64,000 nucleotides of DNA, taken from positions 1,227,690 through 1,291,689 of the forward strand of contig NW_003314318.1 of the NCBI RefSeq assembly GCF_000143415.4. Direction: 5' to 3'. The first letter of the stretch is position 1, and each line of letters opens with the position of its first letter. Under the pieces are notes generated by a model. The model was not told the DNA's origin. It worked only from the letters and a program-made list of their open reading frames with translations, and did no database searches. This DNA comes from Selaginella moellendorffii (Eukaryota; Plantae; Lycopodiophyta). Of this stretch, positions 477 through 6,466 are shown piece by piece. Both the position numbers and the translations under genes were made by a program.

Positions 477-778
477 AAACTGAGCTCACCTGCTGGGGCA
501 TGGAGCGCCACTATGAGCCTCAAGCCATAGATTTTTCCTGCGAAGCATTGCCGGCTTGGATTGATCGGCTTCATGGACCGCTTCTCCAACTGAAATCCAT
601 GCTTGTTTGCCTGAGCGTATTCCTCTATCGCCGAAGCATCGACCCTGCGTATCGCAGCATTCGGCCAATGCTCGCCCTTCACACAAAATGGTGCTATCAC
701 CGGGGCAACGAAAAAGAGCAAAGAATCTTACCAGGGAGCCCATCAACTTCGCTAGGGTTTCCAAGCGGTGACGAGGGT

Positions 779-2752
779 TTTCGTGAGAAAGATGTCTTCT
801 TTCTCTGCGAACGCGACTAAAATAAGTATGCAGCGAGCTTGCACGGTGCTGGGGTGTGGTGAGTGTCTCGCATTTTCTTTAGTGGAGAATGAGATTTATT
901 CCTCGGGCTTGGTTGGGATTGTTCCGGGAAATCGTCGCTGCTTCTCTTTTTACTTGGCTTCTGGTGATAACGGCTTCTGTTTAAAGGAATTGTGATCAGG
1001 ACAGAGGGCGGAGTTTTTGCATCTACCTAAGAAGAAACTTACGGACTTTGGTAAGAAACTTCTTCTGGCGGACTTAGCTCTTGCGCTTTCTATTTGTCTT
1101 AGCACTGGTGAGAAAGGAGATTCAAGACGAAACCGATCGGATCACTGGACGTAGCAAACAAATCTCGCCGGTTCCTATTCATCTCAGCGTTTACTCTTGA
1201 AATGGTTTGTTTCATGGTTGATTGTTTCCACGACGAGTTTTAACTTCTTGTGTTTTGTGGCAGTCGTGAATTTGACTATGATAGACCTTCCGGGCTTAAC
1301 GAAAATTGCTGTTGGTAAGAATTTTCATGACAAATGTTTTAGCTTTTTCTTTTCCTTTTGCTTTGCAGACGGGCAGCCTGAAAGCTGAGATTGAAAACAT
1401 GGTCAGGTCTTATGTTGAAAAGGTTGGTTTCTGGTTATTATTCAACCTTTGCAGTGCTTAACATCTTGTAACTTCAGGAAAATACGATCATTCTGGCCAT
1501 CTCTCCTGCCAATCAAGATATAGCAACATCAGACGCAATGAAACTTGCACGCGAAGTCGATCTGACGGGTGAGATTATATTGTTTTCATGGCAATGTTCT
1601 AATGAATTAGAACGTTTGCGTTAGGTGACCGAACGTTTGGAGTTCTCACACAGTTGATGGATAAGGGAACCAATGCTATTGATGCAAGTATCTTTATGTT
1701 TACTAAACTCTTCAGTTTAGATTGAATCTGAATTTCTACAGGTGTTGGAGGGTCATTCCTATCGATTGCAACGCCCCTGGATCGGTGTTGTCAACCGATC
1801 ACAAGCAGACATAAATAAAAGTGTCGACATGATCGTCGCCAGACGAAGGGAACGTGAGTATTTTGCTTCAAGTCCAGATTACAGGCATTTGGCAAGCCGC
1901 ATGGGCTCTGAATATCTTGGAAGAGTTCTTTTGAAGGTGATTGTGATACATTTTGTGGCCGCTCTGAAAAATCTCTTTTGCAGCATTTGGAAGCAGTGAT
2001 AAAGGCACGCATTCCGAGTATTCAGTCGCTTATAAACAAAACCATCACCGAACTAGAAGCAGAACTTGACCGACTTGGGAGACCTATTGATGCTGACGCA
2101 GGGGTAAGATAAAGGACTAGCTCGCTTCATTATATCTGGAGCTGAAGTACTTGCATTTTTAGGGGCAACTGTATACGGTGATAGAGCTTTGCAGGGCGTT
2201 TGACCATGTTTTCAAGGCGTATTTTGATGGAGGGTAAGTTTTTTTGTATGAGGAAGCTTTTAGTTGACTTACTTTTGAGTATCGTGTCATATGTCCTGGA
2301 GGAGATCGAATCCATAACGTGTTTGATCACCTGCTTCCTGAAGCTGCCGTTCGACAGACATCTTTCCATTCAAACGGTCGGAAAGTTATTGCAGAAGCTG
2401 ATGGCTATCAGCGCCATTTGATTGCTCCAGAGCAAGCTTATCGGTGACTTATTGAAGTCTTGCTCGGCTATTTGAGAGGTGGCTGTAGGTGCTGTAAGAT
2501 TTGGTTTGTTATACTTCTGAGTTGAAGAGCATTTTGTACTTTGTTTGCCAGGTGCATTTTTTACTCAAAGAGCTTGTGATAAACGAGACGGTAAAATGTT
2601 ATTATGTTTGTTTTATATGGGCTCGCATAGGAACTTACGCGCTTTCCAACTTTTCAGGCGGAGTTTCTGCTGCAGCGGAAAGATTCGTGAAGACAATGGA
2701 CTTCTCCATGTCGCCCTCGTTAGGAAATTTTGTCAGTTGGTAGTGGATATGG
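779..2752 (+). pseudogene. Degenerate inverted copy of the dynamin DRP1 gene at 14685-17357
   Basis: Near-identical exons and introns (ORF 1742..1999 vs 15973..16230; 1197..1388 vs 16505..16783). Many small deletions and frameshifts; start codon and 3' end lost. Confidence 0.92.
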
Positions 2753-3320
2753 TATTAGCAGGGATGCAATGTTTGAGATGGGAATCAACTCGCCAGAGCT
2801 GCCTTTTTCACTTCAAGCAATGTAAGCTCGTGTTTTCAGGAGGTTATGAGTTAACAAACTGCATTGGCAGGCGGGAGTGAGTTCGCAGACTCTGACAGCA
2901 AGAAACACGACCAAATGTGCCTGGATTTTAGTAATAAGTGGTTTGCGCTGGTTCCTTCATCTCAACTGGTACTTTTGCAAATCGAGATTGATGATATCTA
3001 ATATTGTCTCCAGGGCGCAAGTGTACTGAAATCTCCGCATATCCTAGGTGATATGAGTGGGGACACATTGAACGATCCTTTATCCGATCGTTACGCCAAG
3101 CTCAAGAGCACTATGACTTGCGTGGACAAGGAAAGTGACGATTATAAGACGGTTCAGAAACACCTGGAGAAAACTTACGAGCCAGTCATGCATGACGATG
3201 TGGTAAGTTTTGTTTTCCGTTAGCATTGCGCGTGGAACTAAACGTGTTTATTTCGTGCTCAGTCTGTTAGAGGACTTGTCATTGTACAAAGTGCTTCGTT
3301 GGTGCGGTACGTAAAAGAAA
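2743..3320 (+). pseudogene. Degenerate inverted fragment of the PARP3 gene (source about 11700-12650)
   Basis: ATGCAATGTTTGAGATGGGAATCAACTCGCC, GATCCTTTATCCGATCG and ACAAAGTGCTT..TTGGTGCGGTACGT match the reverse complement of the intact gene, with internal deletions. Confidence 0.9.
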
Positions 3321-3374
3321 AAGAAATTCCGGCTTTCATATGCTCTGACTGCGGTAATCACTGGTTTGTCGCAG

Positions 3375-4150
3375 ACCAGGGGGACGAATCCTTCTCAAGT
3401 CTGCTGATTTTCTGGAGCATCACCTTGACGAGCTTGCAGCTCTCGAGACTCTGGACAATGGAAAGCCATTGGACTTGCCGATGTCCCTTCGGCTCCTTCG
3501 TTCAGGTAGGATCAAATGATGAAGTGCCTGAGGACCTTGTACAGGCTTCGTTGACCAAATCTGTGGCAAGACCATGAAAATTGACGGGCCTTACCACGCG
3601 TACACTTTTCTCGAGCCGATTGGTGTCGTGGGCCAGATCATCCCATGGAACTTCCCGCTCATCATGTTTTTCTTGAAGATCGGCCCCGCGAGCAACTCCC
3701 TTGAGTGCTCTCTTTTGTGCAAGCCTGCTGAAGGAGGTCTGTAGTTTTTCTCGTTTCTGCTGTTGATCTCTAACTGGAAAACGTGAATTTGTGCTGCAGG
3801 CTGGATTGCCTCCCGGCGATCCTTTCTGGTTGGGTTTTAACAATCTTTGCCGATGTCTAGGTAACACCATTCTCTCTTTGCAAAAAGTGTTTTTCATCTC
3901 TTTCGTTTTGTGTTCTTTCTAACTGATTGATTCGCCAGGGAATGGTAACAAATCAAACTGGCTAGATTCTTGAGGATTCTACTTCTTTCTTGACACTTTC
4001 CTCCCCATCCAGAACAATAGACGACACGGCCTACGCTTTGAAGATCATGGACAGCGTGAGTTGCTCTTGCCGCAACTGGAAGACATCCCAATGAAAGTGC
4101 CGGGTCGAAGACGTGGTAGCAATTGATCCACACCGTCCCGGCTCTCAAGG
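3375..4150. pseudogene. Aldehyde dehydrogenase family 2 (ALDH2) gene fragments
   Basis: + strand: [78 protein letters not shown]|AGLPPG. - strand at about 4090-4150: LRAGTVWINCYHVFDPA. No intact ALDH gene in the window. Confidence 0.85.
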
Positions 4151-4199
4151 ACAACGTCAATCAGTTGGCCGAGTTGAGCCCCTTGGTTACTAGAGCCCC

Positions 4200-4791: not shown

Positions 4792-4810
4792 ATTTGTTCC
4801 TAGACCAAGG

Positions 4811-4995
4811 CTCCATCTCCGCCACCTAGCAAAGAGGAGGAATGGTCTCGTCCAAGCAAGGACGAATGGTTTTGGGGTGCCGGGGACTTGCGATAGGTTG
4901 CTTGGATCGGAGGTACAATCCCGCGGGGCCGACGTTTTACAATAGGCAGTGCGGGGATATTGTCACCAATAGAAACTGGGGATATTCCTGTTGCC
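4811..4995 (+). pseudogene. Degenerate inverted fragment of the STIG1-like gene
   Basis: CTCCATCTCCGCCACCTAGCAAAGAGGAGGAATGGTC...GGATATTCCTGTTGC matches the reverse complement of about 22587-22820. Confidence 0.88.
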
Positions 4996-5700
4996 GCCTC
5001 CGGAAATGCGTAAGTTCTTGATGATCTGCGGTGAATCGTTCTCGTGTTCTTGTTCTTATATCTATCTTGTCTCTGTCAGCCAAAAAGTGGATCGTCGCTG
5101 ATGTATATGTGGAGTGCGAGCCGATTGTAAGCCTGTCATTCCGATCGATGATCTTCTATATTTCTTCTTTTGATGATGGATCGTGTTTTCCAGATTGTTT
5201 TCGTTGATATTGTCTTGCACTTACCGTCATTTGTTCTTCAACAACAAAGTTCTAAGTTCGAAAGTAAGTGTTTCGCTCTTTCGATTCTCTCAGAGCGGAG
5301 CTGATTTTGACGTTTGAAAGCAGGTTTGTGACGGCAGCTCTTTTACTTTGTTGTTTTGGAAGCATGTCTATACGACTATTTTAGTGCTGAGAGGGCCGCT
5401 GCCATCTCGTATCGATCAGCTAAGGTGATTTGAGCATGAGCTTACATTCCATGATGAGGATAGAGATGTTGACCGTTCCAGCTCGACGAACGGGAGTTTA
5501 ACGAGAGTTTTCCGCAATCACTTCAAGTTACTTCAAGCTTTTCATCTTTGCGATGATGGTATGGTATCCTTCCTCTATATTTGCGTCGATTGTGTGTTCC
5601 TTATGGGTGATGATTGAGGTCTTGGTAATCTCCAATGGAGTCGCTTTCCAAGATAAGAAATGGAAGGACAAACTTGCTGTTGGCTGTTGACAGAATGACA
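4995..5700 (+). pseudogene. Degenerate inverted fragment of ARV1
   Basis: CGCCTCCGGAAATGCGTAAG, GTGGAGTGCGAGCCGATTGTAAG and CTTCAAGCTTTTCAT match the reverse complement of 21420-22265. Confidence 0.88.
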
Positions 5701-5709
5701 AGTGAGTTG

Positions 5710-6466
5710 CATCAACCTCCCCATATTCTTTTTTTCCTTGCAGTTCTAGTAAAGGCCAATGCAGCAGCTCTATGTGCATCCAGCTTGGTGAAGGATGGTT
5801 TCCTACCCCCATCCGCTTCCCTACGCCACCAGCAAGCAGGATCACAGATACCGAGTGCTCTGGAACCACCTTAAAAGTCTGCAAGGAATCAAGCAAATCA
5901 GCCCCTAAAGTGCTTACCCTTAGTTTCGAGCTTCTAATCGTTGCTATTCTTGCAGGCTGATATGCCAAAACAATATTTGCCTCTTCTAGGACAGTCTATT
6001 GCGCTAGACAGGTTAGTGCGGAACAACTTGATCTTCGTTTTGTTGATGCTAGCGCGTTCAGTTTTTATACATTTGCTAACATGCCTGGTGGTTTGTGACC
6101 CATCATACAAGCATCTGTTTGAAGGTAACAACATTTTATGCCATGGTGAAATTTGCATGTCTGATCGAACTAGTGGTTTCTCAGTTGTTTCAGGCTATCA
6201 GTGATGACTCGATGCTAGCTTGTATCCATGATTCTGCGCGACCTCTTGTCCTCGGCCATGACAACCAGAGGGTGTATGCGTTGCTTACTCGTCTTTCAAA
6301 TACTCAAACTGTTCGCGTGGTTTTCAGGGACGCCTGGGTACATGGAGCTGCCGTTCTTGGAGTACGTGTTAAGGCCACTATCAAAGAGGTACGCAGATCA
6401 TACTCGTTCTGGTTTGATAGTAAATTTGACCACAGGCAGGAAGCGATCACTTCGTCAAAAAGACAT
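5710..6466 (+). pseudogene. Degenerate inverted fragment of ispD/MCT with one exon re-inverted (about 5807-5910)
   Basis: [29 protein letters not shown] and [14 protein letters not shown] on the + strand; the [21 protein letters not shown] exon lies on the - strand. Confidence 0.9.

Follow-up and report, generated by a model that had tools for sequence, protein, structure and literature searches.

A 64,000-nucleotide stretch of the Selaginella moellendorffii genome (RefSeq assembly GCF_000143415.4, contig NW_003314318.1, positions 1,227,690 to 1,291,689 of the forward strand; hereafter the window) contains, near its left end, a rearranged copy of a gene cluster that lies intact a few kilobases further right. 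The copy is a real and old segmental duplicate, circularly permuted and inverted relative to its source and now decaying, and it is a plant case of a known duplication route. Excision of the cluster as a DNA circle followed by re-integration beside the donor is the best single explanation and the likeliest route, to which we assign a probability of about 0.45; it is unproven.

A circularly permuted copy in two haplotypes

The window represents haplotype B (scaffold GL377622; GL377622.1 in GCA_000143415.2), and haplotype A is the allelic region on GL377565.1, represented here by loci L002, L004, and L005. A further 3.9 kb of haplotype B DNA to the left of the window (L003) was included, so that coverage extended 3.9 kb leftward in haplotype B, 5.5 kb leftward in haplotype A, and rightward in haplotype A up to the SPL gene. 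The copy was mapped to its source by self-BLAST, with E-values of 1e-24 or better for the main blocks and weaker values for short linkers. Independent support came from a DNA run (X1) and an RNA run with spliced contigs (X4).

The intact source cluster consists of PARP3 (11036 to 14280), DRP1 (14685 to 17357; 608 amino acids), the BUD23/WBSCR22 methyltransferase gene (17714 to 19037), gene X (19092 to 19690; 181 amino acids, with no Pfam family), ispD (19717 to 21241), ARV1 (21271 to 22253), a STIG1-like gene (22486 to 22911), and RPB3 (30035 to 31202; 320 amino acids). All lie on the minus strand except gene X, which is on the plus strand. The STIG1-like gene was placed by Pfam and the others by annotation together with exon models, which were built in scripts and used solely to class sites as synonymous or nonsynonymous. 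The modelled lengths of DRP1, gene X, and RPB3 equal the annotated lengths, and the gene names are consistent with the NCBI and Pfam tables. In the exon models, ARV1 and ispD lie on one strand, with 29 bp between the ARV1 stop and the start of ispD (21241 to 21271).

In the copy, pieces of DRP1, PARP3, RPB3, STIG1, ARV1, and ispD retain their introns, are inverted, and follow one another in an order that is a rotation of that in the intact cluster. The retention of introns throughout rules out a processed pseudogene. The copy starts in the heavily deleted DRP1 5' region (765 to 1007, plus strand; source 17506 or 17387 to 17004), where position 17506 depends on a 15/16 match present in haplotype A only and 17387 is the stronger anchor. 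The following plus-strand blocks, all obtained by self-BLAST, are a DRP1 pseudogene piece with introns (1008 to 2752; source 16989 to 15186), a PARP3 piece (2750 to 3352; source 12425 to 11662, by self-BLAST to 3318/11698 and by extended alignment beyond), an RPB3 piece (4200 to 4786; source 30739 to 30035), a STIG1 piece (4804 to 4994; source 22827 to 22588), an ARV1 piece (4995 to 5700; source 22264 to 21409), and an ispD piece (5707 to 6467; source 21073 to 20111). Between the PARP3 and RPB3 pieces lie ALDH2-type exon fragments (3353 to 3830, plus strand; the ALDH family of 3574 to 3690 was confirmed by Pfam) and an orphan GC-rich gene fragment on the minus strand (4060 to 4199) with opposite-strand RNA reads over it.

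Self-alignment thus agrees with the six-gene permuted map proposed by an earlier reading made from the sequence only. The proposal that all pieces are flipped needs qualification, since at least five small secondary inversions occur within the copy. Three are visible in the window: a 59-bp fold-back of DRP1 exon 2 and intron at the left edge (676 to 734, minus strand; source 17051 to 17109), whose source stretch is found again at 945 to 995 in the orientation of the copy itself; an RPB3 exon 2 remnant that is inverted locally (4035 to 4059, minus strand; source 30741 to 30756 and 30795 to 30806); and a local inversion in the ispD piece (5804 to 5914). The other two, gene X and part of BUD23, are found in haplotype A. 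In haplotype B only, the NCBI annotation places an 830-amino-acid DRP1-ALDH chimeric gene model over the copy (1202 to 6469), which looks like a prediction artefact because the copy carries frameshifting deletions.

The copy exists in both haplotypes, which have lost different parts of it. Haplotype A lacks the RPB3 and STIG1 pieces through a 1.0-kb deletion, and these pieces are retained in haplotype B. Conversely, haplotype A retains 2.4 kb (L002 10273 to 12666) that are deleted from haplotype B at 6466 to 6469 and that comprise the remainder of ispD, an inverted gene X, BUD23, and 1 kb of gene-like orphan DNA at the right end of the copy (L002 11690 to 12666). The BUD23 piece of haplotype A continues for about 20 bases after the BUD23 stop, to position 17694 of the source. 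The start of the copy (17506 or 17387) and its end (17694) are therefore 190 to 310 bp apart in the source without overlap, an abutment that is not base-exact, both ends being eroded. By a simple ratio, chance would place two independent ends of a 19-kb unit at such a short distance in about 1 to 2% of cases. This abutment makes two separately eroded copies unlikely and points to a single break. The break had been placed between ispD and DRP1 from the window alone, an appearance due to the 2.4-kb deletion in haplotype B; haplotype A moves it to the spacer between BUD23 and DRP1 (17506 to 17694, the copy starting at 17506 or lower and ending at 17694).

Contigs of the DNA run cross the PARP3/ALDH join (2771 to 3362) and the RPB3/STIG1 join (4667 to 4839), and contigs of the RNA run cross the DRP1/PARP3 join and positions 4570 to 5009. 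These are internal joins; among the pieces listed, none spans the outer ends of the copy. The check by reads and by the other haplotype that had been proposed for the junctions thus turned out in favour of the copy: the joins recur in the second haplotype and in an independent DNA run, and an assembly artefact is ruled out.

Divergence, decay and probable re-use of the copy

Copy and source differ by 5 to 12% substitutions, together with many deletions. Synonymous divergence is 15.5% and nonsynonymous divergence 4.6%, and both are homogeneous across eight genes (p=0.73 and p=0.48, respectively). When synonymous and intron sites are combined, divergence is heterogeneous among pieces (p=0.002). 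The similar divergence of all fragments expected from a single event therefore holds for synonymous and nonsynonymous sites but not for introns, nor for a converted tract in DRP1. The two haplotypes of the copy are 1.4 to 2.1% apart, which makes the duplication roughly 7 to 10 times older than the haplotype split.

Within the DRP1 piece, the divergence profile puts the share of fixed differences relative to the intact gene at about 1.4% between 1040 and 2215 (plus strand), introns included, and at about 10% past a sharp edge near 2215. This 1.2-kb tract is a later gene conversion with intact DRP1 as donor, and few deletions lie inside it. The conversion was probably a non-crossover event, since the tract has decayed sequence on either side in the copy and intact sequence on either side in the source. 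A milder conversion may also account for the low divergence of ispD.

With both haplotypes pooled, about 6.9 kb of the 19.1-kb source remains in the copy (about 36%). The reduction of some 19 kb to less than 6 kb noted in the window is consequently real as a strong shortening and somewhat overstated in extent. Deletions greatly exceed insertions and are mostly 5 to 30 bp long; they continued after the haplotype split, and two large ones are haplotype specific. No clear excess of microhomology was found at 42 small deletions (mean, 1.0 versus 0.75), a test that bears on the decay deletions and not on the main joins. One-step, microhomology-driven compression was rejected, given this result and the continued deletions. 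The shortening came later than the copying step and reflects progressive decay in a genome prone to deletions. Haplotype-specific losses have been reported for S. lepidophylla, and a "bloat and purge" pattern for Selaginella (PMC5750206). The decay seen here is alike in its haplotype-specific kilobase deletions and its predominance of deletions over insertions, whereas "bloat and purge" acts on long terminal repeat elements and the decay here acts on a copy of a gene cluster.

A third copy of PARP3, also compressed, lies to the left of the window in both haplotypes (L003 1682 to 2852; source 11055 to 14270). Among intron sites that all three PARP3 copies retain, nine changes are unique to the source, one to the mosaic, and three to the left copy; on this small sample, the mosaic and left copies are probably sisters. 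A gene model in this region fuses a metaxin-like sequence (GST_C_6) to the third PARP3 copy (L003 1672 to 4731, reaching window position 873 on the minus strand; L002 2675 to 5604). The fusion model encodes 679 and 681 amino acids in the two haplotypes, which are 1.6% apart. Haplotype B additionally carries an inverted metaxin-like arm (L003 1 to 1368 versus L003 2851 to 4284; window 1 to 426), with identities of 94 to 100% in its outer part and 79 to 84% in its inner part; haplotype A has only 61 bp here. The arm runs off the left end of L003 and may lead into a second mosaic copy.

The left PARP3 copy also bears on the ALDH2-type fragments, which had been taken to mark the primary closure junction of a circle. 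Because it reaches source position 11055, the original duplicate was probably longer, and the PARP3/ALDH join at about 11662 is secondary; the placement of the ALDH pieces at the primary closure is thus unsupported. As a candidate for that closure, a 36-bp resemblance of the PARP3 end to the RPB3 promoter was discarded, since the stretch matches the PARP3 intron better and what is left is an A-run. Local alignment found no ALDH2 source in the window or the fetched flanks, and neither a representative search with a single exon nor a profile search gave a Selaginella protein. Loose ends in the RNA demonstrate that an intact, expressed ALDH2 source gene exists. For the orphan pieces, Pfam and the Atlas gave no match, and local alignment to the surrounding DNA gave none that was significant.

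The proposed circular intermediate and its rivals

In duplication mediated by extrachromosomal circular DNA (eccDNA), a donor of order abcdefghij gives a copy of order efghijabcd, with direction kept (Takahashi and Innan 2020, PMC7188851), and cattle KIT colour-sidedness (Durkin et al. 2012) is given as a case of it in a passage of PMC12722694. The Selaginella copy is alike in its swapped halves, neighbouring cut ends, and independently supported breakpoints, and it agrees with the operational definition of PMC7188851 in order, abutment, and read support. It differs from the systems described there and from cattle KIT in being inserted about 4 to 5 kb from its donor and in inverted orientation. 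It is also old, with about 36% of its length left, and its closure junction has been overwritten by foreign fragments.

The proposed history is one old, DNA-level duplication through a circular intermediate. A segment of 19 kb or more, from about RPB3 to the PARP3 3' end, would have circularised, perhaps by excision from a transient tandem duplication. The circle would have opened in the BUD23-DRP1 spacer and been inserted in inverted orientation about 4 to 5 kb past PARP3, probably on the far side of GnT-III and TPT. Opening at that spacer and inverted insertion beyond TPT would yield the order, the abutment, and the uniform coding divergence in two steps. ALDH2 and other gene fragments would have been gained or kept at the closure region. 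The unconstrained copy then eroded through many deletions of 5 to 30 bp, several kilobase-scale deletions, and small inversions, as the alignments display, and it probably spawned the further PARP3 copy now in the metaxin-like fusion, as the shared intron changes suggest. According to the divergence profile, the 1.2-kb DRP1 stretch was rewritten from the intact gene, and the present state would be a pseudogene mosaic with occasional read-through transcription.

Several observations weigh against a single circle. Neutral divergence is 20% in the half comprising the DRP1 3' part and PARP3 and 12% in the half from RPB3 to BUD23 (p=0.0002), a contrast that comes from introns, and the unequal halves require extra conversion or two steps. 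The closure junction is unreadable because ALDH2 and orphan sequence totalling about 0.85 kb occupies it. In addition, the third PARP3 copy, the inverted metaxin arm, and the small inversions reveal repeated local events, which make multi-step routes plausible.

The circular intermediate argued for by the sequence-only reading is favoured by the permutation, the abutting ends, the uniform divergence at coding sites, and the absence of transposon ends, but nested inversions yield an identical map. In this rather unlikely scenario, which needs no free circle, the unit R-S-A-I-X-B-D-P (RPB3, STIG1, ARV1, ispD, gene X, BUD23, DRP1, and PARP3) was duplicated in tandem ahead of GnT and TPT, a first inversion, with one break separating B' from D' and the other past TPT, created a long D-P inverted repeat, and a crossover between the D-P arms flipped the middle to give today's map with ends exactly abutting. 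Order, orientation, and abutment then follow by construction; inversions are frequent here (676 to 734, 4035 to 4059, 5804 to 5914, gene X, and BUD23), the DRP1 copies have demonstrably recombined in the conversion tract, and tandem duplicates are abundant in the genome (6693; PMC5750206). The scenario nevertheless takes three events against two for the circle. The visible conversion tract is not the crossover it needs, given the decayed copy and the intact source on both sides, so that the crossover must have been early and have left no remaining trace. Tandem duplication followed by further duplication and partial deletion is a recognised false-positive pattern for circle-mediated copies (PMC7188851 Fig. 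4A), which resembles the present case in its swapped order and repeated local duplications. It differs in that no same-orientation tandem remnant was seen in the window, 3.9 kb to its left in haplotype B, 5.5 kb to the left in haplotype A, or in haplotype A up to SPL, and in that deletion by itself would not be expected to leave ends that abut so nearly exactly.

Template switching of the kind described as fork stalling and template switching (FoSTeS) or microhomology-mediated break-induced replication (MMBIR), serial local duplications drawing on near and distant templates, or a slice across an older tandem junction would account for the foreign fragments at an internal join and at the right end, for the left-edge fold-back (676 to 734), the third PARP3 copy, and the inverted metaxin arm, and for the unequal intron divergence of the halves. 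These routes leave the 190 to 310 bp abutment to chance, at the 1 to 2% given above, and microhomology is not in excess at the small deletions, which reflect decay rather than the main joins; as a group they are doubtful, more so than nested inversions. Two independently eroded inverted tandem copies, or an artefact, are very improbable. Judged from haplotype B only, the two ends map 2.7 kb from each other in the source, a distance compatible with chance erosion, and haplotype A narrows this gap to 190 to 310 bp; an artefact is at odds with junctions shared by both haplotypes and an independent DNA run and with copies that differ by 5 to 12% substitutions from their source.

Capture by a Helitron or a Pack-MULE-type element is likewise largely refuted and is given very little weight. 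Mosaics of joined, intron-containing fragments from several genes are typical of such elements, as is an occasional chimeric spliced RNA, and two strong hairpins are present at 6583 to 6698 (z=-7.8). Neither long terminal inverted repeats nor an 8- to 11-bp target-site duplication of the Pack-MULE type was found, the longest word shared by the boundaries being 7 bp and AT rich, and a crude pattern scan of the mosaic limits found no Helitron 5' TC or 3' GC-rich hairpin with CTRR at either end. The hairpins are AT rich, lack CTRR, and lie outside the copy. Unlike Pack-MULE and Helitron mosaics, moreover, the pieces are mostly collinear remnants of one adjacent 19-kb block that has been shortened progressively. 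The hairpins form an adjacent pair just past the TPT 3' end in both haplotypes and are possibly a remnant of a miniature inverted-repeat transposable element.

Expression, surroundings and significance

In two raw RNA runs, most reads match the source genes, and mosaic-only depth is about 0 to 3. Pieces of run X4 cross mosaic-specific joins, and a single X4 contig joins DRP1' exon 4 (1170) to ARV1' exon 5 (5602) across 4.4 kb; the splice acceptor at ARV1' exon 5 is retained in haplotype A. These X4 data suggest occasional read-through and chimeric splicing of the mosaic.

Between the copy and its source lies the single-exon gene GnT-III (9466 to 10572). A tRNA-Trp(CCA) gene, the sole Rfam match, is located between GnT-III and PARP3 (10820 to 10891), near the putative left limit of the duplicated unit. 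Further right, an intronless chromodomain open reading frame (ORF) occurs at 24694 to 25149 (Pfam PF00385, 6e-12). In both haplotypes, the AT-rich DNA between this ORF and RPB3 contains a 129-bp piece (26204 to 26332) that shares 81% identity with the SBP domain in SPL (32185 to 32313). An AT-rich, intronless ORF of 301 amino acids (52721 to 53626), with a weak B-lectin match (E 0.002), is located in the right half of the window, which is rich in repeats.

The documented cases of heritable re-integration of circles carrying host genes come mainly from cattle, yeast, and humans. A literature search found no survey of plant genomes for permuted gene-block copies, which does not disprove the existence of one. 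Selaginella is, to our knowledge, a lineage without whole-genome duplication. It is conceivable, although improbable at present, that Selaginella routinely duplicates genes by re-integrating gene-bearing circles and that this copy seeded both the metaxin-PARP3 chimera and chimeric spliced RNAs. A single locus cannot by itself prove a circle. This two-haplotype plant case nevertheless displays the life history of a copy, from its birth through decay by deletion and gene conversion to its re-duplication into a chimeric gene.

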